Positions 4,355 through 43,820 of a stretch of DNA of 64,000 nucleotides are shown in pieces. Origin of the DNA: Neoechinorhynchus agilis (lineage: Eukaryota; Animalia; Acanthocephala); NCBI GenBank assembly GCA_051530055.1, contig CM121342.1:12539480-12603479 (forward strand), read 5' to 3'. Positions within the stretch are counted from its first letter, which is position 1, and each line of letters opens with the position of its first letter. The notes under the pieces were generated by a model that ran no database searches, had not been told where the DNA came from, and saw nothing but the letters and a program-made list of their open reading frames with translations. A program made the position numbers and the translations under genes.

Positions 4355-6057
4355 ATGAAAAAGGGTAAACTAAATTTGGTGATCTACAAAAACGATCTCT
4401 GTTTATATCTCGTACATGTTGTCGTACTAACTTCGATTTTACTTATTACTTACGTAGTAAACGTCCGAAGCCTCAGACGAATTCCAAACGTTTTGAATGA
4501 CAATAACAATTCAGCTAAGAAGTTATTTTGGATGCTTATCGCTTTTGGGCGCTACTCTGCGCTAGTCTCTCTTCCGATTACACTTTCTTTACTCTTGGGA
4601 TTGTACATACCACCCTATAGGACGGCGCAAGGCAAATCGAAGGTGCCGCGAGTAGATCAATCCACGATTTGTTTTAGAGTTGTTACTCGAGGAACTTTTC
4701 CAGCACTCGTAAACCGAACGGTCCGTTACAATCTTATGTTATGCCAGAGAATGAGCCCGGCACTGGGCAGTTTTATGTTTGAAATTGTGACGGATAATGA
4801 AATAAAGGACCTCCCTGAAGTTGTTAGGCAAGTAGTCGTGCCACTTGGATACTCCACGAAAAGACGTACGCTGTTCAAAGCAAGAGCGCTTCACTACGCG
4901 TTAGAAGATGGTATAGAATGCGATTTCCTTTCCGATCGATGATGACCCGGGAGTGTTGACTATATATTGGCTAAGTTAACCTTTTCTGTACCAAATTATG
5001 TAGTTTAGAAAAAATGAGTTAGATGATTTGGCTTGGTAGTGGACGTTGTTATATGGTCAACTGTGCGCTCCACCTAAGAATCCTTCATTTTCCCAGTAGT
5101 TGATGATGGATCATCGGCCATCGGAAGAGAATTCCCATTGAAAATTTATTAAAACCCGGAGATTGGATTTTTCACTTGGACGAGGAATCAGTTCTGACGG
5201 AGTCGCTGATAGGTGGAATCATAGCGTTTATCAATGCACAAAAAGTTGCTTCATGCCCAAAATCATTTGGCCAGGGCGCCATAACCTATGGTCGCATTGA
5301 GATCATCAATATCTTTACGACGGTCGCGGAAAGTTTCCGCGTTGCTGCTGATTATGGTATCTTTCGATTCTGTTTATTGCTACTACAATCACCGGCATTT
5401 GGCTTCAAAGGATCGTTTATTTTAGCGGAATACAGCGCCGAGAAATCACTAGGCTTTGATTACGGACCAAATGGCTCGTTAAGTGAAGATATATTCTTCG
5501 CTATCAATGCGAAATCAAAAGGATATTCGTTCGGATGGATCTGCGGCGAATTAAACGAGAAAGGGACGTTTAGTACTGCTGATTTCTTAAGACAAAGGAA
5601 ACGCTGGTTTAGTGGAATTAAAAATACTGTTCTGTGCTCTACTCTTCCATTTTTGAGTAGATTTTCTTTTCTCTTCGCTTTCGTGTCAACCTGCACAATG
5701 CCAATAAGTCTACTGGCCAATATTATCTGCATAGTGATGAGAAAAAGACCCGTTATTATAGTACTTGAAGCACTGTTCGCCTTCCTATGTGCAGTAAATT
5801 CATATGCGTTCACATAACACTGCATTTTTCCGCCTCAGGGAGTCATCGGAAAACTGGAGCAATACGGATTCTTGAGATCAATTGACCTTTCCAAACTTAC
5901 TTGGAAACGTCGCTTCATTGCGATTGCATTAAACTTCGTGGGTCCAATATATTTATGCGTTCTAGAGTCAGTTTCACTTATTTGGTCTTTGGTACCCACA
6001 AAGAACCGACCTACAACATTCTATATCGTTCAAAAGGAAATCGAGCTCAATGTTTGA
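4355..6057 (+). CDS. egh: Beta-1,4-mannosyltransferase egghead/bre-3 homolog; inferred exons 4355-4912, 5143-5815, 5864-6057 (474 aa)
   Basis: Motifs ICFRVVTRG, FEIVTD, FKARALHYALED, DWIFHLDEES, FGQGAITYG, SFRVAAD, EDIFF, QRKRWFSG and C-terminal FYIVQK. Two stop-containing interruptions are removed as hairpin introns. Confidence 0.9.
4913..5142 (+). other. Candidate non-canonical stem-closed intron (egh intron 1)
   Basis: ATAG + arm AATGCGATTTCCTTTCCGAT (4917-4936) pairs with 5120-5139, then GAA. The join gives LEDG-NLLKPGDW. Exact junction is uncertain by 1-2 codons. Confidence 0.65.
5816..5863 (+). other. Candidate non-canonical stem-closed intron (egh intron 2)
   Basis: 48 nt with TA at both junctions and an 11/13 bp stem. 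The join gives AVNSYAFT-YGFLRS. Confidence 0.75.
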
Positions 6058-6436
6058 ACCTTAAGACGTATTGTGATCATACGCTTGTTAAATAAGAAAG
6101 CACATAATTGCAATATGAGCGAGTTTGTGCTAAAGTACATAGAAACAAATCGGTAAACCAGAAATAAACTCTAGCTCGATCGCTATGTGACTGTAGGATG
6201 ATTGGGCGAACTCATGGGTTCTCAACTAAAATCGAATTTTGCAAACAAAAGATCTATCACTGCCTAGTTCAGTGTTCAAATGTGATCGATATTGACAAAA
6301 TTTCGCCAAGTTTTAATTTTCTCTATAATGCTAAATTTATTCCTTTTAAATCCCATTGACGTACAGTCGCTGTACATTTTAATAAAAATATTTTATCTTA
6401 TGTTTGGCTAGTCGGTTACATTTTTTGTCTAAGTGT

Positions 6437-6680
6437 TGTGAACATCCCTTACACGGCTGACAATTTTTCTTGGGCACACAAACCACGAGACGAGATACGG
6501 CTGAATGAAGGAAACTCCATAATGAGTACCACCTCCTGGAGGTATATAAAGATCCGAAGGGATGTACAAACTCATGACCGTATGGTTCAGGGTTTAAGTG
6601 ATTTCATATATTTTTCTGGCCCAGATCGGTGTTCTGTGTACCCAACACAAAACTTAGAGAAAAAAATATTTACTTCAAAT
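6437..6680. mobile_element. Partial copy of foldback family A
   Basis: CACGGCTGACAATTTTTCTTG and CCCAGATCGGT match the 1171-1358 element. GGAGGTAT...GATCCGAAGGGATGTACAAACTCATGACCGTA matches the arms of 58411-58780. Confidence 0.6.
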
Positions 6681-6699
6681 AATCCAGGGCGTCACAATG

Positions 6700-9039: not shown

Positions 9040-9120
9040 GGTGGGAATATCCCGTCCGGAGATGTCCACTAGGGTGGGAAATATTCCGTCGGGGGGGAGG
9101 TGTCCGATTGGGTGGGAATT
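9040..9120. repeat. Three ~35 bp degenerate direct repeats (AGGGTGGGAA...CCGTC...TGTCC)
   Basis: Read directly; they abut the foldback at 9122. Confidence 0.6.
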
Positions 9121-9739: not shown

Positions 9740-12700
9740 CGTCAACTTTCTCCCTCGTATTCGTGGTCTACTCTCTCTCGTATTCGTCGTCCACTTTATC
9801 TCGCATTTTTCGTAGACTCTCTCTCGCGGCGTAGTCACTCACTCTCTCTCGTGGTGGTCGCCTATCCTCGCTCGTAATCGTCGCCTGCTCCCTCTTGTAT
9901 TCCTCCTCTGCTCTATTGTATTCGTCGCCCACTTTCTCGCGGAGTTGTCACCCACTCTAAAACGTTGTGGTCGCCTACTCTCTTTCGTGGTAGTCGCCCA
10001 CTCTCTCTCGCAATCGCCGCTTATACTCTATCTCGTATTCGTCGTCCGCTCTTTCGTCCGTATTTCTCGTCTACTTGCTCTCGCCACCATCGCTCACATC
10101 TCCGTTGTGGTCGTCTACTCTCTATTATATTCGTCGCCTACTTTCTCTCGTATTTCTCGTCTAATCTCTCCCTCGTATACGTCGTCTACGCTCTCTCGTA
10201 TTCGTCTTCTGCTTTCCCTTGTATTCGTCGTTTAATCTCGCTCTCGCATTCGTCTACCCTTTCTCGTATTCGTCGCATACTCTTTCTTTCGTATTTGTCG
10301 ACTACTTTCTCTCTCGTAATCGTTATTTACTCTCTTTCGTATTCGTCGTCTACTCTCTCTTTTATATTCGTCGTCTACTTTCTCTCGTATTCGTCGCCCA
10401 CTCTTTATTTGGTATTCGTCGTCTATTCTCTATGTCGTAATGGTCGTCTACTCCCTCTTTCGTATTCATCGTCCACTCTCTCTCGCATTCATCGTCTAAT
10501 TTCTCGTAACCAACGTTTACTCTCTATTGTGGTAGTCTATTTTTTCTTTAGTTGTGGTCGTCTATTCTCTCTACTGTGTTCGTCATCTACTTTCTCTCGT
10601 ATCTGTCGTCAAGTCTCTCTTTCGTATACGTTGTCTACTTTCTCGCGTATTCGTCTACTCTCTCGTATTCGTCCTGTATACTCTGTTTCGCATTCGTCGT
10701 CGAATCTCTCTTTCGTATTCGTCGTCTACTCTATCTATTTCGTATCCGTCGCCCACTCTCTCGTAATCGTTATCTACTCTCTCCATCGTGTTGGTCGGTT
10801 ACTTTCTCTCGCAATCGCCGTTTGCTCTCTCTCTCTCGTGCTAGTCTATGCTCTTTCTAGTTGCGGTCGTCTACTCTCTCTCTATTGTATTCGTCGTCTA
10901 CCTTCCCTCATATTTGACGTTGAATTTCTCTCTCGTATACGTCGTCTACCCTCGCTCGTATTCGTCATCGATTCTCTCCCGCATTCGTCGTCCAAATTCT
11001 CTCCTATTCGTCGTCTACTCTCGTTCGTATGCGTCGTTTACTTTCTCTCGCCTTCGTCGTCTTATCTCTCTTTCATATTCGTCGTCTACTCTCTCTCTCG
11101 TATTCGTCGCCTAATCTCTCTCGCAATCGTCGTCTACTCTCTCGTTCGTATTCGACATCTACTTTCTATCGTAATCGTCGTTTCCTCGACTTTTCGTTTT
11201 TGTCGTGTACTCTCTCCCGTAATCGTCGTCCACATTCTCCCCCATTCTTCGTCCAATCTCTATATCCCGTATACGTCGTCTACTCTCTCGTATTCGTCGC
11301 CCGCTCTCTATTTCGTATTCGTCGTCTTCCTTCTCTTGTAACCGACGTTTACTCTCTATCGTGGTTGTATATCCACTCGCCAGTTGTGGTCGTATATTCT
11401 CTCTATTGTATTCGTCGTCTACTTTCTCTAGTATGCGTCGCCTAGTCTCTCTATCTTATACGTCGTCTACTCTCTCTATCTCGTATTCGTCACCTACTCG
11501 CTCTTCTGTGTTCGTCGTCTACTTTTTCTCGTTTTCGTCGTCTACTCTCGATTCTGTGTTCGTTGTCTACTTTTTCTCGTATTCGTCGGAACTCTTGCTC
11601 TCTCGCATTCGTCGTCTACTCTCTTTCGTATTCGCCGTCTACTTTCTCCCGTATTCGTGGCCATCTCTCTCTTCTAGTCGTGGTATACTCTCTCGTATTC
11701 CTCGTCTAATCTCTCTCGTGTTCGTCGTGTACACTCTGTTTCGTATTCGTCGCTACTCTATCTCGTATTCTTCGTCTACCCACTCTTGTGTTTGTCGTCT
11801 ACTTTCTCTCGTATTCGTCGCTGCTCTCTCTTGCATTCGTCATCTACTCTCCTTCGTATCTGTCGTCTTCTGTCTCCCGTATTCGTCGTCTACTCTTTCT
11901 TGTATTCGTCGTCTACCCTTTCTTGTAATCGTCGTCTACTCTTTCTTGCATTCGTTGTCATCGCTCTCCCGTATTCGTCGTCAGCCCTCTCCTAGTCGTG
12001 GTATACTCTCTCGTTTTCGTCGTCTAATCTATCTGGTATTCGAAGTATACTCTCTCTTTCGTATTCGTCGTCTACTCTCTCGTATTCACAGTCTACTCTC
12101 TTTCTCTCGTGTTCTTCGTCTTCTCTCTCATGTTCGTCCTTTATTCTCTCTTGTATTCGTCGTATACTCTCTCTTTTGTGTTTGTCGTATACTCTCGTTT
12201 GTATTCGTCGTCCACTCTCCATTTCGTATTCGTCGTCTATTCCCTATCTCGTAGTCGTCGTCTACTCCCTATTTCATATTCGTCGTCCCCTCTCTCTTAT
12301 TCGTCGTCTACTTTCTCTCGTAGCCAACGTTTACTCTCTATCGTGGTAGTCTATCTTCCCCCTAGTTGTGGTCGTCCAATCGCTCTATTGTATGCGTCGA
12401 CTACTTTGTCGAATATCCGTCGTCTAGTCTCTCTCTCGTATACGTCGTCTACTCTCACTTGTATTCGTCGTCAACTCTCTCTATCTCGTATCCGTCGTCT
12501 ACGCTCGTAATCGTCTCCCACTCACTCGCATATGCCGTCTACTCTGTCTCTTTCGTATTCGTCGTCTATTTTCTCTCGTAACCGACGTTTACTCTCCGTC
12601 GTGGAACTCTATCCTCTCTCTAGTTGTGGTCGTCCATTCTCTCTATTGTATTCCTCGTCTACTTTATCTCGTATCTGTCGCCTGGTGTCTCTCGTATACG

Positions 12701-15700
12701 TCGTCTAGTCTCTCCCGTATTCGTCATCGATTCTCTATCTCGTATTCGTTGTCTACTCTCTCTCGTGTTCGCCGTCTACATTCTCCATTATTATTCGTTT
12801 ACTCTCTCGTATTCATCGTACACTCTCTGGTAAACGTCGTCTACTGACTCTCTTTCGTATCCGTCGTCCACTCTCTATTTCGTATTCGTCGTATACTCTC
12901 TGTAATATTCGTCGTATACTCTCTCTTTTGTGTTCGTCATATACTCTCGTTTGTATTCGTCGTCCACTCTCTATTTCGTATTCGTCGTCTATTCCCTTTC
13001 TGTCTATCTTCTCCCTAGTTGTGGTCGTCTAATCTCTATTGTAGTCGTCGATTATTTTCTCTCGTATTCGCCGTCCACTCTCTTTCCTATTCATCGTCAA
13101 CTCTCTCTCTTAATCGTAATTTACTCTCTCCCTCGTCATCGTCGTCTAATCTCTCTATCTTGTATCCGTCGTCTACTCTCGTATTCGTCCTCCACTCTCT
13201 ATTTCGTATACGTCGTCGATTCTCTATCCCGTAATCGTCTTCTCCGTCTTTCGTATTCCACTCTCTGGCACACGTCGTCTTCCCTCGCTTTCGTAATCGT
13301 CGTCTACTTTCTCTCGTAACCAACGTTTACTCTCTATCGTGGTAGTCTATCCTCTTTCTAGTTGTGGTCGTCTATTCTCTCTATCGTATTCGTCGTCTAC
13401 TTTCTCTCGTATCTGTCGCCTAGTCTCTCTCCTATACGTCGTCTTCTCTCTCCTTATCGTATTCGTCGTCTACTTTCTCTCGTATTCGTCGGGTACACAC
13501 TCCTTCGTATTCGTCGTCTTCTCTCTCGTATTCGTCGTCGAATGTTTGTCTCTAGTGTTCGTCGTCGAATCTCTGTCTCTAGTGTTCGCCGTCGAATCTC
13601 TGTCCTTCGTATTCGTCGTCTAATCTCTCTTTCGTAATCGTCCTCTTTTCACTCTCTTGTATTCGTCGCCTACTCTCTCTCCTGGCCGTCGTCTACTCTT
13701 TTTCGTATGCGTCGTCTACTTTCTATCGTAATCGTTGTTTGCTCGCTTTTTCGTATTCGTCGTTTACTCTCGCTCGTAATCGTCGTCCACATTCTCTCTC
13801 ATTCGTCGTCTAATATCTCCATCCCGTATTCGTCGCCTACTGTCTCCCGTATTGGTCGTCTCCTATTCTTCCTCTACTATCTCGTATTCTTGGTGAACTG
13901 TCTATTTCGTATTCGTCGTCTATTCTCTCTCTTAAACGTCGTCTACTCCGCATTTCATATTCGTTGTCCACTTTCTCTTTCGTATTCCTCCTCCACGTTC
14001 TTTCGTATTCGTCGTCTACTCTCTCGCACTCATATTCGTCGTCCACTTTCTCTCGTATTCGTCGTCTACTCTCTCTCAAATTCGTCGTCCACTTTTTCTC
14101 ATGTTCGCGTCTACTCTCTCTCGTATATGTCTTCCACTTTCACTCCTTTTCGTGGTCTACTCTCTCGTATTCGTCGTCTACTCTCTCCCTCGTATTCGTC
14201 GTCTACTCTCTCCCTCGTATTCGTCGTTTGCTCTCTCACTCGCATTCGTCGTCTGCTTTTACTTTCGTACTCGTCTTCTACTCTTTCTTTCATATTCGTC
14301 GTCTTATCTCTCACTTATTCTGTCTCTCATATTCGTCATCTACTCTCTCTCATATTCGTCGTCTACTCTCTCGTATATGTCGTTCACTTTCTCTCCTATT
14401 CGTGGTCTACTCTCTCCTCGTCTTCGTCTTCGTCGTGTACTCTCTCATTCGTATTCGTCGTCGAATCTCTCGTGTATTCTGTCTCTCGTATTCGTCGTCT
14501 ACTTCCTCTCGTATTCGTCGTCGAATCTCTCGCGTATTCTGTCTCTCGTATTCGTCGTCTACTTTCTCTCGTATTCGTCGTCTACTCTGTCGTATTGGTC
14601 ATCAACTCTCTTTTTCGTGTTGGTCGTCTACGTTCTTTCGTAATCGCCGTTTGCTCTCTCGTCGTAGTCTATCCTCTTTCTTGTTGCGGTCGTCTATTTT
14701 CTCTCGTATTTTTCGTCGAATTTCTCTCTCGTATACGTGGTCTGCTCTCTCTCGTACTCCCCGTTGACTCTATCTCATATTCGTCGTCTACTTTCTCCTG
14801 TATACGTCGCCTAATTTCTCTCGTGTTCGTCTGCTCTTTCGCGTATTCGTCGTCCACACTCTCTCTTGTATTGGCGGCTTACTCTCTCTCGTATTCGTCG
14901 TCTACTGTCTCAATTATTCGTCGTACATTTTCGCTTTTGTATTCGTGGTCTACTCTTTCGACTATTCATCGTACACTTTCTCTTTCGTACTCGTCTTCTA
15001 CTCTTTCTTTCATATTCGTCATTTAATCTCTCGCGTATTCTGTCTCTCGTATTCGTCGTCTACTCTCTTTCGTATTCGTCGTCCACACTCTCTTTTGTAT
15101 TGGTGGCATACTCCCTCGTATTCGTCGTCTACTGTCTCAATTATTCGTCGTGCACTTTCTCTTTCGTATTCGTGATCTACTATCTCGACTATTCGTCGTG
15201 CACTTTCTCTTTCGTATTCGTCGTCTACTCTCTCCCTCGTATTCGTCTTCGTCATGTACTCTCTCATTCGTATTCGTTGTCTAACTCTCTTTCGTACTCG
15301 TCTTCTACTCTTTCCTTCATATTCGTCGTCTAATCTCTCGTGTATTCTGTCTCTCGAATTCGTCGTCTACTTTCTCTCGCCTTCGTCGTCTTATCTCTCT
15401 TTCATATTCGTCGTCTACTCTCTCTCTCACATTCGTCGTCTACTTTCTCTCGTATATGTCGTTCACTTTCTCTCCTATTCGTGGTCTACTCTCTCCTCGT
15501 CTTCGTCTTCGTCGTGTACTCTCTCATTCGTATTCGTCGTCGAATCTCTCGCGTATTCTGTCTCTCGTATTCGTCGTCTACTCTGTCGTATTGGTCATCA
15601 ACTCTCTTTTTCGTGTTGGTCGTCTACGTTCTTTCGTAATCGCCGTTTGCTCTCTCGTCGTAGTCTATCCTCTCTCTCTCGTATTCGTCGTCTACTTTCT

Positions 15701-16140
15701 CTCGTATCCATCGCAACTCTCTCTCGATTTCGTCGTGTACTCCCCTACGTATTCGTCATCAACTTTCTTTCCTATAAATCGTCCACCTGCACTCGTATTC
15801 GTCGTCTACTCTCTAATATTCGCCGTCTACTCTCTCGTATACGTCGTATGCTCTCTCTTTCGTTTTCGTCGTCTACCCTCTCGTATTCGTCGTCCGCTCT
15901 CTATTTCGCATTCGTCGTCTATTCTCTATCTCGTAATCTTCGTCCACTCTCTCGTATGCGTCGTCTACTCTCCCTCTTTTGCATTCGTGGTCTACTCTCT
16001 TTCGTGTTCTTCGCCCACCCCCTCTCATATTCGTCGTTTTACTACTTTCGTAATCGTCGTTTACTTTCTCTCTTATTCGTCGCCTACTCTCTCTCGTATT
16101 AGTCGTCTACTCTCTCTCTCTCTCGTTGTTGTCGTCTACT
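9740..16140. repeat. ~6.4 kb degenerate C/T-rich minisatellite, unit ~TATTCGTCGTCTACT(CT)nCG (21-25 bp)
   Basis: Hundreds of recognisable units with extreme strand asymmetry and internal block duplications. Confidence 0.95.
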
Positions 16141-30014: not shown

Positions 30015-30118
30015 AAGGTTATGACCTCGTCGGGTTCATCATCAGTTCTATGAGCAGAATAACCACTTGTATTTTAGAACTGATGATGACAATCCCTCGG
30101 TGAGGTTCGCAGAACGTT
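30015..30118. repeat. Short palindrome with two hammerhead-like arms in the CYFIP/PRP8 divergent intergenic region
   Basis: CCTCGTCGGGTTCATCATCAGTTCTA inverted with TAGAACTGATGATGAC; CTGATGA on + at 30080 and on - at 30045. Same family as 2414-2600 and 60003-60075. Confidence 0.6.
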
Positions 30119-30703
30119 TTTAATCGAAAAAAATATTTACCGGCTAAATACTTCTTACTTCCGACGAGGAATCTCCATGGGTATTTTGCGCAGAGGGTGA
30201 AACATCACCTCGGGAATTGACGGTCTCGCGCACCCGAGTCAAGGCTACCAACTTAGGTAGTCCCACCACATCCATTTTTAGATGCTTGAGAAGGAGGCTG
30301 AGGCCTTGAAAATTCGCATAAGCAATAAGTGTCATCATATACTCCCCGGACATTTTCACTGGATCTCATTTTGCTCACTAATGTTCGAGATGTAAAGATT
30401 TTCATCATTTACTTTTTGATAGCGAATTATAATAATTGATTTATTTATTTGATAATTTTCGGCCTTCGCGTAGGCCTTCAGTCAATTGTTTGTTATTTTT
30501 TTCAACTGTGAATGTTAGTAGTTGAAAAAACTTACACGCAATAGACTGATTTTTTATTTCCGGCACCTTGTTCTACAACTAATGGCGAGAGGAACGCTAA
30601 ATGCGATTTTAGTCTTAAACGTCAAATTAAAGCGTGCCATTTTTCCTTCTGTGGGTTGTTTCGTTTGTAAATTTGTCTTTGAAAGATTTCTTCTTTGTTT
30701 CAG

Positions 30704-33700
30704 ATGACTGCATCAGCAGAAGAGGATTACCTTCAAGAGAAAGCACGTCGGTGGCAGGCTCTCCAAACTCGTCGGTATGCCGAGAAACGGCGGTTTGGGT
30801 TTGTGGATGCTCAAAAAGAGGATATGCCATGTGAACACGTCCGTAAGATAATTCGAGATCATGGCGACATGACCAATAGAAAGTTCAGGCATGACAAACG
30901 AGTGTATCTTGGTGCCCTCAAGTATATGCCTCATGCAGTTCTCAAATTGCTTGAGAACATTCCCATGCCCTGGGAGCAAATTCGGGATGTTAAAGTCATA
31001 TATCATATAACGGGAGCGATTACGTTCGTGAACGAAATTCCTTGGGTAATTGAGCCCGTATATGTGGCTCAATGGGGCACTATATGGATTATGATGAGAC
31101 GTGAGAAACGAGATCGTCGTCATTTTAAGCGAATGAGGTTTCCGCCATTTGACGACGAGGAACCTCCTCTTGATTATGCGGATAATGTGCTAGAAGTCGA
31201 ACCATTGGAGGCAATTCAGATGGATCTTGACGAAGATGAGGATGCCCCGATAAGATCCTGGTTCTATGACCACAAACCTCTCAGTCGAAACCTTCGAATG
31301 GTTAACGGTCCAACGTACCGGAGGTGGCGATTACCTCTTGATGTTATGTCCAATCTCTACCGCATGGGTGGTCAATTACTTACTGATCTCTTAGATGACA
31401 ATTATCATTACCTCTTTAATCTCCAATCATTTTTTACTGCCAAAGCATTAAACGTAGCTATTCCAGGAGGACCCAAGTTTGAACCATTAGTCAAGGATAC
31501 GAACGCCCTGGACGAAGACTGGAATGAGTTCAATGACATCAATAAGGTCATCATTCGGGCGCCTATTCGTACAGAGTACAGAATTGCGTTTCCTTTCCTT
31601 TACAATAATCATCCATTCAGCGTTCGGTTGAGCAAATACCACACTCCGAACACAGTTTTCATCAAGACGGAAGATCCGGACCTACCTGCGTTTTACTTTG
31701 ATCCGCTTATAAATCCCATCTCTCACAGAATGTCCAATATGAAAGTCGTAGACATGGACGAAATCGAGAATGAAGACGACAATAGAGTTGTAAATATTGA
31801 AGATTTTATTTTACCGGAAGGAATTCAACCTTTTCTCGAATCAGTTCCACTCTACACTGACCGGACATCAAATGGTATAGCTCTTCTTTGGGCGCCACGG
31901 CCATTTAATCTTCGTTCTGGACGTACGAGACGCGCTGTGGACGTTCCATTGGTCAAAAGTTGGTATACTGAGCACTGTCCAAGTGAATATCCCGTCAAAG
32001 TTCGCGTTTCATACCAAAAACTCCTCAAATACTACGTCCTGAATGCTCTTCATCATCGACGGCCAAAATCTCAAAAGAAGCGGTACTTATTCAGAAGCTT
32101 TAAGGCAACAAAGTTTTTCCAATCTACTGTTCTTGACTGGGTAGAAGTTGGTCTTCAAGTTTGTCGACAGGGGTACAATATGCTTAATCTACTTATCCAT
32201 CGTAAAAACCTCAATTACCTGCACCTTGATTATAACTTCAATCTGAAACCAGTAAGGACATTGACGACCAAGGAACGTAAGAAGTCAAGATTTGGAAATG
32301 CATTTCATCTCTGTAGAGAGATTCTAAGACTTACCAAACTGATTGTTGATTCCCATGTTCAATACAGACTTGGAAACGCCGACGCTTATCAGCTGGCCGA
32401 TGGTATTCAGTATATTTTTGCTCATGTCGGACAATTGACTGGAATGTATCGATACAAATACAAGCTCATGAAGCAAATCAGAATGTGTAAAGATCTTAAA
32501 CATCTCATTTATTACCGGTTCAATACTGGACCTGTCGGTATGACGGAGAAAATGTTCATTTGTGTGGAAGCGGCTGACAACAATCTATTTAAGTTGCAAA
32601 CGAATGATATGAGAAAATTTGAGATGTATTTTGGGACCTTGTCATATCTGTAGGGTCGAGTCTCGAATGACATGTCATCTCTCGATTTTCTCCTATCCAT
32701 GATTTTTTATGAATTTATAATTCTGTTAATTTTTAGCAATTCTTTTATACTCTGGTGACCATTAGCTCCGAGTAAAGGACCAGGCTGCGGATTTTGGGCG
32801 CCAGGCTGGCGCGTATGGATTTTCTTCCTTCGTGGAATAACTCCTCTCTTGGAGCGATGGCTGGGTAACCTTTTATCTCGTCAATTCGAAGGACGTCACA
32901 GTAAAGGAGTAGCTAAGACGGTTACTAAACAGCGAGTGGAGAGTCACTACGACCTTGAGCTCCGTGCTGCAGTTATGCACGACATTCTGGACATGATGCC
33001 CGAAGGAATAAAGCAGAACAAGGCTCGTACAATTCTTCAACATCTAAGTGAAGCCTGGCGTTGTTGGAAGGCTAATATTCCTTGGAAAGTTCCTGGTCTT
33101 CCAATCCCGATTGAAAACATGATTTTGCGATATGTAAAAGCCAAAGCAGATTGGTGGACAAGTACAGCTCATTACAACCGTGAACGTATTCGTCGTGGTG
33201 CAACAGTGGATAAGACTGTTTGTAAGAAAAATCTAGGACGATTAACTCGCTTGTATCTGAAAGCAGAGCAGGAGCGACAGCACAATTATCTAAAGGATGG
33301 ACCCTATGTCACAGCCGAAGAAGCAGTTGCAATATACACCACAACAGTTCATTGGCTTGAAAGTCGTCGATTCTCGCCCATTCCATTTCCTCCACTCGCC
33401 TACAAACATGATACCAAGCTTCTAATTTTGGCTCTTGAACGCCTAAAAGAAGCTTACAGTGTAAAAAGTCGTCTCAACCAAAGTCAAAGAGAAGAACTTG
33501 GCTTAATCGAGCAAGCATATGACAATCCGCACGAAGCATTAAGCCGGATAAAGCGACACTTGTTGACCCAACGTGCATTTAAAGAAGTTTCAGTTGAATT
33601 TATGGATTTGTACTCCCACTTAATACCAGTTTATGAAGTTGAACCGCTTGAAAAAATCACTGATGCCTATTTAGATCAATATTTGTGGTATGAGGCGGAC

Positions 33701-36700
33701 AAACGACGTCTCTTTCCCAGCTGGGTAAAACCAGCGGACACAGAACCCCCTCCACTTTTAGTCTATAAATGGTGTCAAGGGATTAATAATCTGGAGGAGG
33801 TCTGGACTACGTCAGGTGGGCAATGTAATGTCATGCTCGAGACACGATTTGAAAAGATTTATGAGAAGATTGATCTTACCTTACTTAATCGACTATTGCG
33901 ATTAATCTTAGACCACAATATAGCTGACTATATGACAGCCAAAAACAACATTGTTTTAAATTACAAAGATATGAACCACATAAATTCATATGGACTAATC
34001 CGAGGACTTCAGTTCGCATCTTTTATAACTCAATATTATGGTGTTATTCTCGATCTACTTGTCCTCGGTCTCAGTCGGGCATCTGAAATTGCAGGCAGTC
34101 CTCAACTTCCAAATGATTTTCTTACATTCTCGGACACCCAAACTGAGTGTCGTCACCCCGTGAGGCTTTATTGCCGATACATTGATCGAATTCATATGTT
34201 CTTTAGATTCACCCAAGAAGAGTCTCGAGAACTAATCCAACGATATTTAACGGAGCACCCGGATCCGAACAACGAGAACATTGTTGGCTATAATAATCGA
34301 AAATGTTGGCCCCGAGATGCTCGCATGCGTCTGATGAAACATGATGTTAATCTCGGCCGAGCGGTTTTCTGGGACATAAAGAATAGACTACCCAGATCAA
34401 TCACTGCAGTTCAATGGGATGATAGTTTTGTGAGTGTGTATAGTCGTGATAACCCCAATCTGTTGTTTAATATGTGTGGATTCGAATGCAGAATTTTGCC
34501 GAGATGTCGAAGTGTCAACGAAGAATTTCTTCATAGAGACGGGGTCTGGAATCTACAAAACGATGTTACAAAAGAGCGTACTGCTCAGTGCTTCCTTCGA
34601 GTCGACGACGAAAGCATGCAGAGATTTCACAACCGAGTTAGACAGATTCTAATGGCCTCAGGATCTACTACTTTCACTAAAATTGTCAATAAATGGAACA
34701 CTGCGCTTATTGGCCTAATGACATATTTCCGAGAAGCAGTCGTTAATACTCAAGAACTGCTTGATCTTCTAGTTAAATGTGAAAATAAAATACAGACAAG
34801 AATCAAAATTGGTCTTAACTCTAAAATGCCCAGCAGATTTCCTCCGGTAGTCTTTTATACTCCAAAGGAACTAGGAGGTCTTGGAATGTTGTCAATGGGC
34901 CACGTCCTTATTCCCCAATCGGATTTAAGATGGTCCAAACAGACCGACGCGGGAATTACTCATTTCAGAAGCGGTCTTAGTCATGACGAGGACCAGCTTA
35001 TTCCAAATCTATACCGATACATTATGCCTTGGGAAAGTGAGTTCATCGACTCTCAACGAGTATGGGCGGAATACGCTCTTAAGAGACAGGAAGCGAATGC
35101 GCAAAACAAACGACTTACTTTAGAAGACCTCGAGGATAGTTGGGATCGAGGAATTCCAAGGATTAATACGTTGTTCCAGAAAGATCGGCACGTGCTCGCC
35201 TATGACAAAGGATGGAGAGCAAGAACTGATTTTACTTGCGCTTGGCGTCCGACTAATCGGTGTTTAGTCTCGTGTAGGTTCACTAGCTCAGTAAGAGTAA
35301 AATCTTAGAATTAGAAATGAAGTCAGTCTAGTTAAAGAAATGCGATCTAAGTCGCATGTTCCCGCTGGGTCTCCTGAATTTTTATTTCAACAAAATTCAT
35401 CAATTGCTAAAAGTGTTCGAAAAATGTCACCGTTCAAGGTTGATTTTTCGGGATGCATTATCTGAAATGCTCCTTTGTCAAGGAACTAAGTTTGAGAGGA
35501 CCCTCTCGGGTGCGCCAAACTCCTCGCCCCTTGACGAACGGTCTTACACTTTGGGCTTTGGCCGGAGTCGATTTTATTTCCCCATCTTTTTCTTTTCGAC
35601 GGTTTCTATCTAACGAACTCTGAGCGCGCTAAGCAATACCAAATTTTGAAGCAGAATCCGTTCTGGTGGACCCACCAGCGTCACGATGGAAAACTATGGA
35701 ATCTTAATAACTACCGAACTGATATGATTCAAGCGCTCGGTGGTGTGGAAGGTATTCTTGAGCACACGTTGTTTAAGGGAACTTATTTTCCTACTTGGGA
35801 AGGATTATTTTGGGAAAAGGCGAGTGGATTCGAAGAGTCTATGCGCTGGAAAAAACTGACTAATGCGCAACGTTCGGGTCTAAATCAAATACCGAATCGC
35901 CGATTCACCCTTTGGTGGAGTCCGACGATCAATCGAGCCAACGTATACGTCGGGTTTCAAGTTCAGCTCGACCTTACTGGCATTTTCATGCACGGAAAGA
36001 TTCCAACTCTTAAAATATCGTTAATTCAAATTTTCCGCGCTCACTTATGGCAAAAGATCCACGAGAGTGTTGTAATGGACTTGTGTCAAGTGTTCGACCA
36101 AGAACTTGACGCTCTTGAAATCGAAACCGTTCAGAAAGAGACCATTCATCCAAGGAAATCTTACAAGATGAACAGTTCAGCGGCTGATATTCTTCTATTT
36201 GCAGCATACAAATGGCCAGTATCGAGACCATCCCTTCTGGCCGATACGCGCGACCTTATGGATTCTACGAGTTCGCAAAAGTTCTGGATCGACGTACAAC
36301 TCAGATGGGGCGATTACGATTCACACGATGTTGAAAGATACGCCCGTGCCAAGTTCCTTGATTATACCACCGACAATATGAGTATATATCCTTCTCCTAC
36401 CGGTCTCATGGTCGCCATTGACCTTGCATATAATCTTCATGCTGCTTTTGGAAATTGGTTCCCGGGGTGCAAACCGCTTGTTCAGCAAGCCATGGCTAAG
36501 ATCATGAAAGCTAATCCTGCTCTGTATGTTTTGAGGGAGCGAATTCGAAAAGGACTTCAACTGTACTCAAGCGAACCCACTGAACCTTATCTAAATAGTC
36601 AGAATTACGGTGAGCTTTTCTCCAACCAGATAATTTGGTTCGTGGACGATACGAACGTGTATCGTGTACAAAGATCCGATTTGCATCGAAGTTTTCTTTT

Positions 36701-38454
36701 GGTGTAGAGAACCGTGCAAATCGGATCTGATAACTATTCACAAGACGTACGAAGGCAACTTGACTACAAAACCGATAAACGGTGCAATTTTTATATTTAA
36801 TCCGCGGACCGGTCAATTATTTTTGAAGATAATACACACGAGTGTATGGGCTGGTCAAAAGCGGCTTGGTCAATTGGCCAAATGGAAAACAGCCGAAGAG
36901 GTTGCAGCTTTAATTCGATCCTTGCCAGTAGAAGAACAGCCTAAACAAATCATCGTTACACGTAAAGGAATGCTTGACCCTCTGGAAGTTCATCTCCTAG
37001 ACTTTCCAAATATTGTAATTAAAGGAAGTGAACTTCAGTTGCCTTTTCAGGCGTGCTTAAAAGTAGAAAAGTTCGGTGATCTTATTTTAAAGGCCACTGA
37101 ACCTCAAATGGTTCTGTTCAATCTATACGACGATTGGTTAAAGAGCATTTCTAGTTACACCGCATTTTCTCGTCTTATTCTGATTTTGAAGGCGCTTCAT
37201 GTGAACAATGATCGAGCTAAGATGACCTTGAAGCCAGAGCGTACGACCGTAACGGAGCCTCACCATATATGGCCCTCATTGAGTAACGAGGAATGGATTC
37301 GCGTTGAATGCCAACTCAAAGATTTGATATTGGCTGATTATGGGAAAAAGAATAACGTCAATGTGGCTTCTTTAACTCAGTCTGAAATACGGGATATTAT
37401 TCTTGGAATGGAGATTTCGGCTCCAAGTCAACAGCGACAACAGATTGCAGAGATTGAGAAGAGCGGCGGAGCAGACGGGGGTCCACAAGATCAAGTTACT
37501 GCGACCATTACCAGGACGACGAACAAGTACGGAGATGAGATAATCACAGCGACCACTTCGAACTACGAGACTCAGGCGTTCTCGAGTAAGACAGAATGGC
37601 GAGTTCGTGCGATTAGTGCTACAAATCTCCACCTGCGCACAAACCACATCTACGTATGCTCGGATGATATTCGAGAGACTGGGTTCACCTATGTTCTTCC
37701 TAAGAACGTCCTTAAGAAGTTCATTATGATCGCTGATCTGCGAGCGCAAATAGCGGGTCTTCTTTACGGCACAAGTCCTGCTGACAATCAAATGGTTAAA
37801 GAAATCAGATGTGTAGTGATGCCACCACAGTGGGGAACACATCAGACTGTTCACATGCCACGAATACTCCCTGATCATGACCATCTCACGGAATTGGAAC
37901 CACTCGGATGGATCCACACTCAACCAAGCGAATTGCCTCAACTGGCTCCACAGGATATTCAATTGCACGCGAGAATGATGACTGAGAATCCCGTGTGGGA
38001 TGGAGAAAAGGCAATTGTCATCACTTGTTCATTTACGCCGGGATCCGTGTCTCTTACAGCGTATAAACTGACGCCTAATGGATTCGAGTGGGGGCGACAA
38101 AATCTTGCAAATATCGATCGAATTTCTAAAGTGCCTCCTGGATATCTTCCTTCGCATTATGAGAAAGTACAAATGCTTCTGAGCGACCGATTCCTCGGCT
38201 ACTTTATGGTACCTGCTTATACGTCATGGAATTTTAACTTCATGGGAGTTAGACATGACACGAACATGAAGTACGATCTGGTCTTGGCAAATCCTAAGGA
38301 GTTTTATCACGAGTCACATCGACCGGCTCACTTCTTGAATGCAGCACTCATGACTTCGACAACTAAAGATCAAGGATCTGATGGAAGGAGTAAAGAAGAT
38401 CATATTGGCAAAGCTTTGGGCATTAATGTTGACCGTGAAGATTTATTCCAATGA
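30704..38454 (+). CDS. PRPF8: Pre-mRNA-processing-splicing factor 8; exons 30704-32539, 32774-35233, 35631-36667, 36732-38454 (2351 aa)
   Basis: Near-continuous strong similarity to Prp8 (PROCN, RT-like, linker, endonuclease-like, RNase H-like, Jab1/MPN). The joined length of 7056 nt is a multiple of 3 and no other frameshift is present. Confidence 0.98.
32540..32773 (+). other. Non-canonical stem-closed intron (PRP8 intron 1), 234 nt
   Basis: GTA direct repeat; ATGA+CGGAG...CTCCG+AGT. The join restores TGPVG-KGPGCG. Confidence 0.7.
35234..35630 (+). other. Non-canonical stem-closed intron (PRP8 intron 2), 397 nt
   Basis: TA direct repeat; ACTT+GCGCTTGGCGTCCG...CGAACTCTGAGCGC+GCT. The join restores RTDF-KQYQ. 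Confidence 0.88.
36668..36731 (+). other. Non-canonical stem-closed intron (PRP8 intron 3), 64 nt
   Basis: TA direct repeat; ACAA + perfect 14-bp inverted repeat AGATCCGATTTGCA/TGCAAATCGGATCT + GAT. The join restores NVYRV-TIHKT. Confidence 0.9.
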
Positions 38455-39675: not shown

Positions 39676-41543
39676 ATGGACGACATTTCGTTGATCGATA
39701 CCGGTCGGAAATTGGTTCTCGTTGGAATTAAACTTCTTAGATACTCGAAAAAGCATCAGTTTCGGTGTCTTCTTGAAAACACGTTTCTAACCCGATGCGA
39801 GGATAGTCTTAATCGCGTCCTTTTGAGCGTGCTCACAAAATATGACATATTTCGTATGAACGATTGGGAACTAAGTGTTTGTTGTTTGATTATAATGTGG
39901 GCAAATGACGTACTTCCACCAAACATCGCCCATTCGATACGTCGATGCCGTCAGCATTTTATTGGACTAAGATCATCGTGTTCCAAAAATAAAATTATCG
40001 AACTAAACACGGGGGAATTCTACGACGCAGCCGTTTTTTATGAAGAAAAGGATAACTTAGTTAATATTTAAAACGTTGAAGCTATCTCTGTTCAATGAGA
40101 CCGCTTCAACGCCATACATTGATTCGAATCAACCTCGATTGCAACTATCGTATATTAAATCAATTGCCTTTAATCACCTGTCGCTCAAAGAAAAAGAGCC
40201 TGATTTTAAACTTGTAAAAGTTTTGAGTGTCTCGAAATTGCTCGAAATGCACTGTGAACCGATAGTTTTTGATCATGTACAACACCACCTCGATCTGAAT
40301 GAAGTGAAATGCTTTTCACTCGTTCTCGGGTGCCGTAATTGTCATGCTGGAGTTCACGGTGATTGCCAAGCTAGATTTACGTTCAACGAAAAGATATGCA
40401 ATCATATTCAGAAAAACGGTTTAAGTATTGGAACATTAATGAACGCTGGCCTTATATTTGGACGGGCATCTCAGGACAAATTAGACACTCGAGAAATTCT
40501 AAATGAGATTTTGAGCTCCAGATATCAGTTTCGATTAAATACGCCAAAAGAAAACTATGACTCATTGAACTCTTTCGAACGTTCGTTCTACCGAGTTTTA
40601 GAAAAGAAGATCCATCGAAACGTTAGCAATGGGTTCATCAGTGATGATCTACGTGTTCGTTCCGACTATTGCGATCCCACTCCAATTCCAAATGGAAAAA
40701 TTTGTGAGCTTGTTCGTTGGGAAATCGATTTTGCACTTAACGAAAACGACATACGAACAGCCGCTCGACTCATGATGCACGAAAATGTACTAATAAGTCG
40801 ACATTCAAGAATTAGGCTACAGGAATCGCTTAGAAATGCTCAAAACGTCCATAGGCTTTCTGATCATATAATGTTTCGATACTTTGAAGTAATTCCTTGT
40901 CTTAGTTGCTTTGAGTTAAATCCCTTTGGCTTAATGCATCGAACGGTATTTTTCACCAAGTCCGAAAGTGAAAAATCCCGTCCGATGGCTTGTAGAAAAA
41001 GTGCTCGTTGAAATCGACAATATCCTTTTTCCCGAGATGCAGGCAATAAATCTTAGTCTTCAAAGCGAATACTCGAATACAGTACTACGGCCAATGTCTT
41101 GTCCAGACACGATAGACTGTGCAGTTGAACGTCTTTTTGATACATTTTTTTATTCCGATCAGCCAAAACTGCTTCAAGCACTTTCTATGATCTTCAGACT
41201 TCATAAATTCCCTTCGAAATTTACACAGCTCATGGAATCGTATTGCCTCAAAATAATAATCGAATCTGATATAAAGGAGTGTCTGTCTTGTTTGAACCAA
41301 GCTATGAACAACGAGTATTATTGTGGAGTCAGTTTTCACGATGAAATTCTGTATTGGTTCAATTTAGAGGATAATTCGTTTATTGTTGATGATGTAAGCC
41401 TCTTAAGACAAGTGTCGATTGATTGCTTACAACAGGCGATCGAAGATGCTGATCATCTTAATCTTATAAATGATTGCGTCATTGCTATAAAAGGTAATCT
41501 AAGCATTCTGATTGATTTCGTCAAAGGACAAATTAAGGAATAA
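39676..41543 (+). CDS. Unidentified protein in three near-contiguous ORFs (39676-40071, 40076-41011, 40968-41543); an upstream exon at ~38880-39126 may belong to it
   Basis: Long open frames with normal composition; frame changes coincide with short hairpins. No family recognised. Confidence 0.55.
40933..40990 (+). other. Candidate non-canonical stem-closed intron in the unidentified gene
   Basis: AATG + 18/20 bp stem (40937-40956 vs 40968-40987) + GCT. Removing 58 nt (or 61 nt to the next TA) joins the two ORFs in frame. Confidence 0.65.
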
Positions 41544-41681
41544 AATCTTAGAGAACGAGCAGAAAAGTGAGGTGGGTGTTAAGGGAACATAGAATCGAAA
41601 TTCGTGAGGTTGGTAAGAATTTTTAAAATTTATAAAAAGCGACACCAATAAGTCAATAATGATTAAATGTCTTAATTGCGG

Positions 41682-42137
41682 TTATTTGTGTGCCAATATA
41701 CGGTTATCTTTCTGGTCTTTTTGATCAATAATCATTCCTGTGATCATCCGCGCTTTCTTTTCCGCCAACATATTTCTCACCAGTGCATAATTTTCACTTT
41801 TAAAAGCATCAGTAACTTTGAATTCATCTTCGGTTCCTTCGAAATAAGCTTTTATTTCGAATGCAAGTGTCACGCGTTCGCGAGACTTTTCGTTCTTCCT
41901 TCGGCATCCAGCGAAACACGCTACGGTCAAAAAAGGAGCTGTAAAGAGCGTAACATAGGTGGACATTCGCGGTCGACTGGTGTAAAGTAAAGTACCCAGA
42001 CCAACTGCAATTCCAAGACCATTACCGTAGACTATCGATTGATATAGGCACGGAATTCGAGATATTGGATGTGTTTGATAGATGAATTTTAACTGTTCCA
42101 ATACCGTTGTTTCTGAACTTTGATCACCCGTCGTCAT
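41682..42137 (-). CDS. COX20: Cytochrome c oxidase assembly protein COX20 (FAM36A), intronless
   Basis: IPCLYQSIVYG...GLG..LYTSR, two TM segments, C-R and EGT motifs follow the COX20 pattern. Confidence 0.7.
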   Translation of the reverse strand: MTTGDQSSETTVLEQLKFIYQTHPISRIPCLYQSIVYGNGLGIAVGLGTLLYTSRPRMSTYVTLFTAPFLTVACFAGCRRKNEKSRERVTLAFEIKAYFEGTEDEFKVTDAFKSENYALVRNMLAEKKARMITGMIIDQKDQKDNRILAHK

Positions 42138-42766
42138 CTATAAGCGAGTTGAGGCTTTGAAATGATTTTGCGATTATCGCAGTTATAATTTTAGCGTTCT
42201 CCCTTATTTCCGGGATGGAACGTTTCGTAATTAACAATTGTATCGATCTCAACTGATGGCTTTCTATCAATATTTTCTTTTAGCCGTCAGAAAGAAAAAA
42301 ATTGATTGCTATCTCATATACTGTCATGTAAAGAAATACAAACAAGCATTTCATGGCTTGGCCTACTCATCCTTGAAACTATAAAAATACCTAAAACCTA
42401 TTTGAAATTTGGTAATCCACCATAGATAGTCCATTCTAATGCCAGGATAATAAGATCTGCAACAACTCCAATTCAATGCCAGAAAATGCGACAACTTGGA
42501 AACATTAAAAAATCGTCCAGTGGAATAATGCCTTTTATTTGAGATTCCTTTAGAGCATAAAATGTTGCTAAGACGTGTAACGATCAGTAAAAAATCTTAA
42601 CCGATTAAATAAAATTTCAGAAATTGAAAACTCCAAAGAAGAATAAGAGTACGTTGTATTGAAATCAATGTTTGCAAAGTGTAAATACGACAAAGTCTGC
42701 TTCGCTTTTTTAAGAGAAATATATTTATAAACATATCGTGGGTTCGGAGAATTGAACGTATTCTCT

Positions 42767-43820
42767 TCAGAATGAAGTATCGAGTCCAATTTCTTCAATT
42801 GGTGCATTTTTCATAACATCCTTAGCCCTCATGTCGCTCGCAATAACATTGCACGTCTTCAATTTGTCCAGAATTTCATCACTAACGGCGCTCCTGTCTG
42901 TCAATTTCGCCACTGCATCATCATAAATCGCGAACAACTCTCTAATGCATTCCCTGGCAGAGGTCAGATAGTCTTCATCGTTTCCCATGAGCACTTTTGT
43001 TGTCAAGAACTCTTCGTATTCTGTGTTAGATATTGCAACCGAAGATCCGCTCAATTCTCGAATTCCTCGAGTAATAGCAGCTACAGTGAGCATATGAGGA
43101 GAATATACGAAAATGGCATCGGTAAAATACATGGCATGAAGAAATTGGTCCGCTAAAACTCGGAGATTCGCAATGTCCTCTGGGCTATTTCTCAAGAACT
43201 CTGCTCTCAAATCGATTAGCCATGCTTCTACGAGAGTGCTCGCATGGTAAACATGGAGATCGTAATCAATCATTTCAATCACGCTCGTTTCATATCCCGT
43301 AATGAGATCTTCTATTGTTGATTCGGTGCCATTTAGTGTGTAAAGACCTGGAACTTTACGGACTCGGTGTCGTCTGAGTACCCGCTGGACCCCGAATCAG
43401 GCTGGTAACATCTTCTTTTCCAAACAGCATTCGAGCTGCATTTGCCAGAACGTCCACAGTAAGCCCGCTTTCTTCAGTTTTAGCTGCAAGGAAAATACAT
43501 CCGAGCATAACACCCAGCGGACTATACATCAACACTGATTGATGAAGGAAAAACCGCTTATAATAATGCATACTCGTCTCTACCACATCCGAAGTTATCT
43601 CCATTTCTTTACACAAGAAAACCAATCTTTCAAAGAAATAGTCAGCAATCAGAGTACATTCGTCTTCGCTCAAAATGCATAGTCCGTTTGCACCAGTATT
43701 ATTGGTTAACTTAAGAGTCGCTATTGCTTCTCGGTGCACTTGTGATCGCAATTTGTTCACACCGCTCATCTCCTCAAAACTCCAATTCCAAAGATGAGAA
43801 GATTCCGAGAAATTTATCAT
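42767..43820 (-). CDS. CCNH: Cyclin H-like; two exons
   Basis: SSHLWNWSF, TSMHYYKRFFL..SV..YSP..VMLGCIFLAAKTEE, YE...I..IDYDLHVYH, LIDLR, TDAIFVYSP..L.VAA. Confidence 0.8.
43316..43406 (-). other. Candidate non-canonical stem-closed intron (cyclin H), ~91 nt
   Basis: TGATTCGG/CCGAATCA stem plus internal hairpins and a 3-nt 3' tail. The join gives GKEDV-IEDLITGYE. A short GT-AG alternative exists. Confidence 0.45.

Follow-up and report, generated by a model that had tools for sequence, protein, structure and literature searches.

Hairpin-closed, non-GT-AG inserts in PRP8 and probably egh of the acanthocephalan Neoechinorhynchus agilis

Euglenids, Amoebophrya and a single lineage of tunicates are known to have structured, transposon-like introns without GT-AG ends. 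The nonconventional introns of Euglena follow the code 5'-N3-CDG-/-CH'G-N5-6^R (a caret marks the junction throughout), in which the spacer lengths, the pairing and the purine at the start of the exon are all required; they are released in circular form once the conventional introns are gone, by machinery still to be identified (PMC12501133, PMC11282704). In the tunicate Fritillaria borealis about 95% of introns are non-canonical and about 5% canonical, the rule being AG/AC-AG/AT plus YAY with a penultimate A in 88% of unambiguous introns, and every intron class, including that derived from miniature inverted-repeat transposable elements (MITEs), requires the U2 spliceosome (PMC13326754); diverged U2AF paralogues are a further requirement of the non-canonical introns. 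The introners of Amoebophrya carry inverted repeats of 8-20 nt between their ends and direct repeats of 3-5 nt that overlap their boundaries (PMC7789003). Here we describe paired-end, non-GT-AG inserts in the PRP8 gene and probably in the egh gene of the acanthocephalan Neoechinorhynchus agilis (Syndermata), whose 46 Mb genome was assembled from long reads, short reads and Hi-C data (PMC12690905). The stretch analysed, hereafter the window, is 64 kb of CM121342.1 (GCA_051530055.1); window position 1 corresponds to 12,539,480, and all positions given below are window positions.

The secure cases among these inserts represent a variant of the structured, transposon-like non-canonical intron that had not been reported before, and they place such introns in a further phylum and within PRP8 itself. 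Full-text literature searches for acanthocephalan non-canonical introns returned nothing relevant. The word 'intron' is absent from the N. agilis genome paper and the text of its supplement is silent on introns and junctions (PMC12690905), and related syndermatan papers do not treat introns and splicing. A preliminary description of the window had proposed up to nine paired-end, non-GT-AG cases. The three in PRP8 are certain, the first in egh is probable and the second in an orphan gene is possible; the second in egh is a plain GT-AG intron, the SLC25A51, cyclin H and orphan gene gaps have in-frame GT-AG solutions, and the TEP1-like gap is undecidable.

The PRP8 gene contains no GT-AG introns and is interrupted by the hairpin-closed kind only. 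Joining its four exons (Table 1) gave a single open reading frame (ORF) of 2351 amino acids without stops, and outside the inserts the coding sequence of approximately 7 kb contained no stop or frameshift and encoded a protein with 86-89% identity to PRP8 of other animals. Retention of any of the three inserts would lead to truncation or a frameshift, PRP8-1 having an in-frame stop at 32651. Since the reading frames are intact, the inserts must be missing from the translated message. The junctions were pinned using alignments of the 30 residues around each, which were ungapped at PRP8-1, PRP8-2 and PRP8-3 in 116/120, 120/120 and 119/120 orthologues, respectively. The peptides that span the junctions are PVGK^GPG, T[DE]FK^QYQ and YRVT^IHKT, and YRVTIHKT was present at the PRP8-3 site in 118 of 119 orthologues. 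Every in-frame, stop-free GT-AG, GC-AG and AT-AC pair at the PRP8 inserts was enumerated, and none restored the conserved peptides. The closest GT-AG alternatives would remove GK, insert some 10 residues or remove VTIHK, each of these variants being found in 0 of the 120 orthologues, and no U12-type ATATCC motif was found at the PRP8 junctions. At the level of the conceptual protein this confirmed that the three inserts are neither GT-AG, GC-AG nor AT-AC introns, and that a colinear protein is predicted from T^A..T^A removal only. The spliced junction sequences predicted under this removal are CCTGTCGGTAAAGGACCAGG, ACTGATTTTAAGCAATACC and GTATCGTGTAACTATTCAC.

The search for PRP8 homologues returned orthologues at 90% identity or less, and N. 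agilis was not among the top 120 matches. The public BRAKER model of PRP8 has the same start and stop as the model obtained here and a length of 2370 residues, which, compared with 2351 for the colinear protein, indicates that wrong GT-AG substitutes are in use. At the 5' end of the gene, the PRP8 start codon was seen to stand directly after an acceptor-like sequence, ttctttgtttcag^ATG (30691-30706), which suggests either spliced-leader trans-splicing or a 5'-untranslated region intron. Spliced-leader trans-splicing is known in rotifers.

The site in the mRNA is TAA at all three PRP8 inserts, and the genomic layout is exon-TAY-NN-(stem ... stem)-NN-TAA-exon. For PRP8-1 this reads ..GG TAT GA (CGGAG ... 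CTCCG) AG TAA AGG.., with arms at 32544-32548 and 32766-32770. PRP8-2 reads ..TT TAC TT (GCGCTTGG ... CTGAGCGC) GC TAA GCA.., with arms at 35238-35245 and 35620-35627 and two G.U pairs on the sense strand, and PRP8-3 reads ..TG TAC AA (AGATCCGATTTGCA ... TGCAAATCGGATCT) GA TAA CTA.., in which 36672-36685 form a perfect 14-bp stem with 36715-36728. In the T^A..T^A register the stem begins after 4 nt and ends 3 nt short of the junction in 3/3 PRP8 inserts, so that the T^A 5' junction and fixed 4/3 spacing of the preliminary description hold for the paired-end non-GT-AG set. The TA repeat gives three slidable registers (for PRP8-1, a shift of -1 or +1), with 4+3, 5+2 or 3+4 unpaired nt and a sum that is always 7. 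In unconstrained minimum free energy (MFE) folds of the whole inserts the outermost pair of PRP8-1 and PRP8-3 joined nt 6 with n-2, counted from the T of TA; in PRP8-2 the terminal helix likewise closed the insert, an extra G.U pair extending it to nt 5 with n-1.

Of the 116,884 TA..TAA pairs in the window, 0.13% had at least five Watson-Crick pairs at the offsets seen in the inserts (P = 0.0013 per site). As the register was taken from the 14-bp stem of PRP8-3, PRP8-1 and PRP8-2 represent two independent matches at about 1e-3 each. The end-to-end duplexes gave z scores of -4.0, -2.5 and -8.7 for PRP8-1, PRP8-2 and PRP8-3, and the whole-insert MFE of PRP8-3 gave z = -7.4. Eleven GT-AG introns from the window were scored in parallel, and the end duplex z score was approximately 0 in 10 of them, the exception being CYFIP J9.

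The egh gene contains one insert that probably belongs to the same class, a placement that relies on protein conservation and predicted folding. The public egh protein, ACOME3_007609 (KAL7672728.1), is identical at every aligned residue to the conceptual egh of the window and its model has GT-AG junctions at both gaps. At egh-1 the NCBI GT-AG model, 4911-5161 (G^GTATAG ... CCCGGAG^AT), deletes eight residues that are present in full in 37 of 38 homologues and in part in the remaining one (ALEDxVxxLxxxDW), and it relies on a poor acceptor, GAG, of a kind seldom seen in the window. The window encodes ALEDG before and (I)ENLLKPGDW after egh-1, in agreement with homologues such as ALEPEVDILKPGDW; the sole other GT-AG option, 4899 to 5130, loses the encoded LEDG. 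The layout of egh-1 is ..GG TAT AG (AATG.. imperfect arms of about 29 nt ..CATT) GA AAA TTT.., a 5/2 (= 4/3) geometry, and the closing pair of its MFE fold joins nt 6 with n-2. The layout common to egh-1 and the three PRP8 inserts is TAY-NN-stem..stem-NN-(T/A)AA, and the spliced egh-1 junction is predicted to be GAAGATGG[T/A]AATTTATTAAAACC. The second egh gap had been put forward as a member with 4/4 geometry. That model adds seven residues found in 0 of 38 homologues, the 45-nt GT-AG solution fits, and egh-2 was set aside as an ordinary intron.

Turning to the origin of the inserts, the bdelloid rotifer Adineta ricciae has a PRP8 gene that is uninterrupted over residues 2-1625, with gaps near 1620, 1865 and 2164, and it has no intron at the N. 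agilis insert sites (residues 612, 1432 and 1778). The N. agilis inserts are therefore lineage-specific. The PRP8 and egh inserts had no similarity to each other, as stated in the preliminary description, or to the rest of the window plus 5.6 kb of flank (70 kb in total). An intergenic foldback MITE (Table 1) has a folding free energy (dG) of -110 and a TAA duplication flush with the inverted repeat GGTYTACAC, which shows that TAA-targeting hairpin elements reside in the N. agilis genome. TAA at the three PRP8 mRNA sites and at this MITE (2419-2594) points to a Harbinger/Tourist-like 3-bp TWA target, and fits better than the Tc1/mariner-type TA duplication originally suggested. PRP8-2 lies in TTAA, the sole TTAA among the sites. 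More foldback MITE-like elements were seen at 58455-58735 and 6495-6603, at 22649-22900 and at 1185-1345, with dG of -80 to -165 kcal/mol overall. One foldback family, with a TAA duplication, has at least three copies in the window, and one element lies within a CYFIP intron.

The account that we favour, by a modest preference, is that the inserts are lineage-specific foldback insertions whose removal would take place on the RNA, at junctions set by the helix. Foldback, MITE-like DNA would have inserted at TAA in coding sequence that until then had no interruption, and the transcript would be cut exactly between the two TA(A) copies to give the ancestral codons back. The terminal helix would join the insert ends, bring the junctions together and set the cut positions, leaving 7 unpaired nt in total; the first intron base would be an A following an exonic T, and the downstream exon would begin with A. 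The sense-strand G.U pairs of the PRP8-2 stem are counted in favour of an RNA helix. Candidate machineries are a tolerant U2 spliceosome aided by the hairpin, on the model of Fritillaria, or a distinct pathway that measures from the helix, like the one put forward for Euglena. In its strongest form the latter would give a bilaterian a second, spliceosome-independent pathway of the Euglena kind, which would recognise a hairpin 7 unpaired nt from T^A..^A, cut, and ligate the exons; we put this forward tentatively, the balance of probability being against it. A simpler possibility, that these are degenerate spliceosomal introns whose non-GT-AG ends are tolerated by U2 and whose stems and TA repeats are transposon relics with no role at the junctions, is regarded as unlikely. 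Its precedent is F. borealis, in which the U2 spliceosome is needed by all intron classes including the MITE-derived one (PMC13326754). It also agrees with the T^A register, in which the first base is A in all and the last base T in four of five candidates, as in the AG/AT class of Fritillaria, with the TCTAAC branch-like motif and pyrimidine run near the 3' end of PRP8-2, and with the hairpins found in some GT-AG introns (CYFIP J9 and SLC25A51). However, it does not explain the identical spacing in three to four unrelated sequences, the 3' arm locks the last 5-30 nt of each insert in a helix, there is no shared 3' dinucleotide (the penultimate base is A in 1-2 of 4), and the canonical introns of the same genes and of the window have strong GT..YAG signals.

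Removal of the inserts from DNA, as TA-bounded internal eliminated sequences of a ciliate-like kind with the assembly representing the germline form, would be compatible with the TA boundaries of which one repeat copy is kept, with the precise and frame-restoring removal, and with the transposon-like inserts and the TTAA setting of PRP8-2. It is nevertheless improbable: we know of no programmed DNA elimination in Acanthocephala, TTAA occurs at one site only, the eliminated sequences of ciliates lack long terminal stems at a fixed spacing from the junction, and the sense-strand G.U pairs of PRP8-2 suit an RNA helix. Heterogeneity of this kind is not mentioned in the genome paper (PMC12690905). 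Alternatively, the window could hold a PRP8 copy or haplotype disabled by three transposon insertions while a functional copy lies elsewhere, or the inserts could be assembly artefacts. No spliced N. agilis PRP8 protein was among the search matches and the public model is aberrant at 2370 residues, as a disabled copy would predict, but the intact coding sequence and its 86-89% identity to animals are not those of a disabled gene, removal of each insert restores universally conserved peptides to the nucleotide, and a second N. agilis PRP8 was absent among the top 120 matches. An artefact is at odds with an assembly built from long reads, short reads and Hi-C (PMC12690905), and egh has the matching architecture, which counts against both versions; we consider them very improbable. 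Finally, ribosomes might hop each insert between matching take-off and landing codons, a process known from phage T4 gene 60 and the mitochondrial 'byps' of Magnusiomyces. Short direct repeats at the ends, a hairpin inside and the mere 64 nt of PRP8-3 recall such bypassing. Known bypass lengths are about 50 nt, far exceeded by inserts of 230-397 nt, inspection of the PRP8-3 sequence revealed no matching take-off and landing codons, and bypassing is, to our knowledge, not known for nuclear genes, so that this explanation is scarcely credible.

Several observations weigh against removal of foldback insertions guided by the helix. The secure cases number three to four and all lie within one 64-kb window. 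A strict scan of the whole window for TA-5-stem..stem-2-TAA gave 91 matches against 148 expected, with no enrichment. When T^A-4-stem..stem-3-W^A was sought instead, accepting G.U pairs and requiring at least 6 bp per stem, the two strands gave 2046 and 1543 matches compared with 2425 expected per strand. Letting the junction vary produced chance stems of 8-11 bp, G.U pairs included, in any 200 x 200-nt box at every locus tested. We conclude that the short-stem pattern by itself is not diagnostic, and with short stems at chance level the case depends on the PRP8 junctions being pinned by protein conservation. No further copies of the inserts were found in the 70 kb, which leaves a MITE ancestry unproven. 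The two repeat copies differ, the left one being TAY in four of five candidates and the right one TAA, which makes a simple target-duplication story incomplete; the stems, which end 2 variable nt short of the repeat on each side, do not fit that story either, and in egh-1 the right-hand copy is AAA, not TAA, with the right-hand TA absent. The unvarying geometry might also stem from how the inserted elements are built, with no measuring involved. The protein collection contained 0 exact matches to the conceptual PRP8, to four variants of egh or to four ORFs from single exons, and a chimeric junction-spanning query for cyclin H, SLC25A51, the orphan gene and TEP1 gave no matches.

Table 1. Positions of genes, inserts, gaps and a foldback element in the N. 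agilis window.
Feature	Position	Strand	Description
egh	4.36-6.06 kb	+	
TEP1-like NACHT/WD40 gene	16.7-18.9 kb	-	
SLC25A51-like carrier	21.1-22.0 kb	-	
CYFIP	22.1-29.7 kb	-	
PRP8	30704-38454 (30.7-38.5 kb)	+	Exons 30704-32539, 32774-35233, 35631-36667, 36732-38454; 2351 aa
Orphan gene	39.7-41.5 kb	+	
Cyclin H	42.8-43.8 kb	-	
M1 aminopeptidase	53.5-57.6 kb	-	
PRP8-1	32540-32773	+	234 nt; VG^KG restored by T^A..T^A removal only
PRP8-2	35234-35630	+	397 nt; DF^KQ restored by T^A..T^A removal only
PRP8-3	36668-36731	+	64 nt; RV^TI restored by T^A..T^A removal only
egh-1	4913-5142	+	230 nt in T^A register; probable member; junction uncertain by 3 nt or less
egh-2	5794-5838	+	45-nt GT-AG intron, gca^GTAAAT..CCGCCTCAG^gga (acceptor CCTCAG)
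TEP1-like gap	18192-18358	-	Between two ORFs (NACHT + WD40); junction undecidable
SLC25A51-like gap	21469-21530	-	62-nt GT-AG solution, tcc^GTATCG..TTCTTTAG^gaa; 13-bp internal hairpin
Orphan gene gap 1	40060-40099	+	40-nt GT-AG solution, GTTAATATTT..CAATGAG; weak GAG acceptor
Orphan gene gap 2	40933-40990	+	Hairpin CATCGAACGG/CCGTCCGATG; 4/3 geometry in frame
Cyclin H gap	43348-43390	-	43-nt GT-AG solution in frame, among several
Foldback MITE	2419-2594		Intergenic; gt TAA GGTTTACAC...GTGTAGACC TAA ac; relatives at 30024-30142 and 59983-60054

With stems arising by chance wherever the junction is free, the paired ends at the five other claimed gaps carry little weight, and for the cyclin H, TEP1 and first orphan gene cases no stems beyond chance level were found. 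The SLC25A51-like gap is most likely an ordinary intron; Pfam repeat scores were 36.0 bits for the GT-AG model and 38.8 bits for the model proposed earlier, a difference of less than 3 bits that is not decisive. The cyclin H gap is probably ordinary as well. Its junction region is not conserved and could not be aligned to human cyclin H, and an alignment with cyclin H from the PDB did not locate the junction. For the TEP1-like gap there were weak GT-AG and GC-AG options and chance-level stems only. A search of 1.8 billion representatives using HMMER matched the orphan gene to its own annotated protein only, P0227, so that homology cannot locate its junctions. The donor of its first gap is the same as that of CYFIP intron 11, and the 5/2 hairpin geometry is out of frame there; this gap, too, may well be an ordinary intron. 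Its second gap is a possible hairpin-class member, and in-frame GT-AG alternatives exist at 40946-41042 (the annotated intron, a strong pair) and 40915-40960. The public model of the orphan gene (40247-41543) begins at an internal Met, and that of cyclin H (42767-43769) has 316 residues and an unverified 52-nt intron.

The ordinary introns of the window were characterised mainly in CYFIP, whose exons were located with a human CYFIP1 guide sequence and whose junctions were called from the GT..AG signals of the window alone. All eleven resolved CYFIP junctions are GT-AG, and the introns are mostly 42-57 nt; their donors read GT[ARK]... and their YAG acceptors are rich in T. In the aminopeptidase one junction was placed, at GAMEN, and it is also GT-AG. 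Altogether, about 15 introns of the window outside the hairpin class are ordinary GT-AG introns. The CYFIP and aminopeptidase introns and egh-2 indicate that the splicing apparatus is conventional and that the hairpin introns form a distinct minority; with canonical introns the norm in the window, the N. agilis genome is unlike that of Fritillaria. CYFIP intron 9 (25172-25222, minus strand) is GT-AG with unusually strong end pairing, GTATGAGATGA..TCATCTCATCACAG (z = -2.6), and this intron and that of SLC25A51 may represent an 'intermediate' stage linking the ordinary kind to the hairpin-closed kind. CYFIP intron 5 (26654-28046, minus strand) is a GT-AG intron of 1393 nt which contains plus-strand ORFs at 26768-27564 and 27789-28070 that are rich in acidic and lysine residues and may be a nested gene or due to chance.

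Elsewhere in the window, a degenerate tandem array of 6.4 kb occupies 9749-16118. Its unit is close to 24 nt (periods of 23, 48 and 71; TCTCTCTCGTATTCGTCGTCTAC) and its strands are extremely asymmetric, the GC skew being about -0.37 and the AT skew about -0.58. Its six frames are open over long stretches, and the public annotation places a 273-residue gene within it (11433-12254). A satellite of about 4.6 kb at 45444-50048 has a 96-bp unit and 26-27% GC, and a block at 48144-48367 is inverted, giving large inverted repeats. Retroelement fragments were found at 19900-20700 (minus strand), 44000-45400 (plus strand) and 61600-64000 (plus strand), comprising the C-terminal part of a non-LTR (long terminal repeat) reverse transcriptase and a zinc-knuckle ORF, behind which lies an endonuclease-like ORF that crosses the window end. 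Scans of the window using Rfam and for tRNA genes gave no matches.

If the favoured account is correct, N. agilis would add a further independent case to those of the euglenids, Amoebophrya and one tunicate lineage, in Syndermata, a protostome group, in a compact genome and with the gene for the most conserved spliceosomal protein as host. The constant distance between stem and junction suggests that the cuts are measured from the helix. The species would then offer a tractable animal system, in which the mostly canonical introns serve as an internal control for recognition, and would illustrate a route by which exon-disrupting transposons become harmless. Should a second pathway exist, foldback transposons would be harmless even in essential exons such as those of PRP8, and comparison between acanthocephalans and euglenids could reveal the enzyme. 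The public N. agilis annotation appears to mis-model PRP8 (2370 compared with 2351 residues) and egh (eight conserved residues lost). Approximately 40-45% of metazoan BUSCOs were reported 'missing' in N. agilis (PMC12690905), and forced GT-AG models could explain part of this figure.

The N. agilis inserts can be compared with several known systems, and, as the preliminary description had noted, they match neither the AG/AC-AG/AT plus YAY rule of Fritillaria (PMC13326754) nor the N3-CDG..CH'G-N5-6^R code of Euglena (PMC12501133). The MITE-derived introns of Fritillaria (Henriet 2019, as cited in PMC13326754 and PMC11282704) resemble the inserts in their metazoan host, terminal inverted repeats, short flanking direct repeat and species-specific positions, and both open with A and often close with T. 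The inserts differ in that AG starts 0 of the 4 and no YAY is found upstream or at the 3' end. Over the three registers the inserts start with AT/AC/AC/AT, TA.. or TG/CT/CA, with upstream triplets GGT/TTT/TGT or KTA, and in the T^A register they end in AGT, GCT, GAT and GAA, so that the penultimate base is A in 2 of 4 in this register (1-2 of 4 overall), compared with 88% in Fritillaria. A YAY^AG register of the Fritillaria type was tried for PRP8 and rejected, as it cannot yield the conserved PRP8 mRNA.

The introners of Amoebophrya share non-canonical ends and a predicted hairpin that joins the exons (PMC7789003). The inverted ends of the N. agilis inserts are 5-14 bp when contiguous and longer with mismatches, and PRP8-2 and PRP8-3 have a 2-nt direct repeat, TA, PRP8-1 one of 3 nt, GTA, and egh-1 none. 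The splice position relative to the hairpin is variable in Amoebophrya (PMC7789003) and constant in N. agilis, and the introners form repeated families in an alveolate protist, whereas no second copy of an N. agilis insert was found in 70 kb. MITEs of the Tourist/Harbinger (TWA) or Stowaway/Tc1 (TA) type are likewise short and non-coding, with paired ends and a TA(A) direct repeat; in the N. agilis inserts, however, the stems stop 2 nt before the repeat, the terminal dinucleotides vary and the left copy is TAY, not TAA. The internal eliminated sequences of ciliates also have TA boundaries of which one copy is kept, precise frame-restoring removal and transposon-derived ancestry, but they are eliminated from DNA by a domesticated transposase and have no long terminal stems. 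Bulge-helix-bulge introns of the tRNA type, which have two 3-nt bulges on either side of a 4-bp helix and an outer helix between the exons, were considered and rejected: an outer exon-exon helix is possible at PRP8-1 only (CCUGUC with GACCAGG), and inspection of the flanks revealed no outer helix at PRP8-2 or PRP8-3 and no 4-bp central helix across the junctions.

The likeness to the nonconventional introns of euglenids is more extensive. In both, GT-AG ends are lacking and the ends are paired, with the helix at a fixed number of unpaired nt from each junction; the downstream exon begins with a purine, which is A in the three PRP8 inserts and egh-1 in the T^A register; the junctions can slide along short direct repeats, the interiors are unrelated and a MITE-like origin is suspected; and conventional introns coexist in the same genes. 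The codes differ in detail. The spacers of N. agilis sum to 7 nt (3+4, 4+3 or 5+2) and those of euglenids to 8-9 nt (3+5-6), and the CDG/CH'G motif fits PRP8-1 (CGG..CCG) only, the corresponding triplets being GCG..CGC in PRP8-2, AGA..TCT in PRP8-3 and AAT..ATT in egh-1. The N. agilis inserts contain no CAG/CTG motif and have an invariant T^A at the 5' junction, and they form a minority class in a bilaterian host, whereas such introns make up about 72% of the introns of E. agilis. By analogy, the Euglena nonconventional introns would be the closest working parallel to the N. agilis inserts, with a similar logic and a different code.

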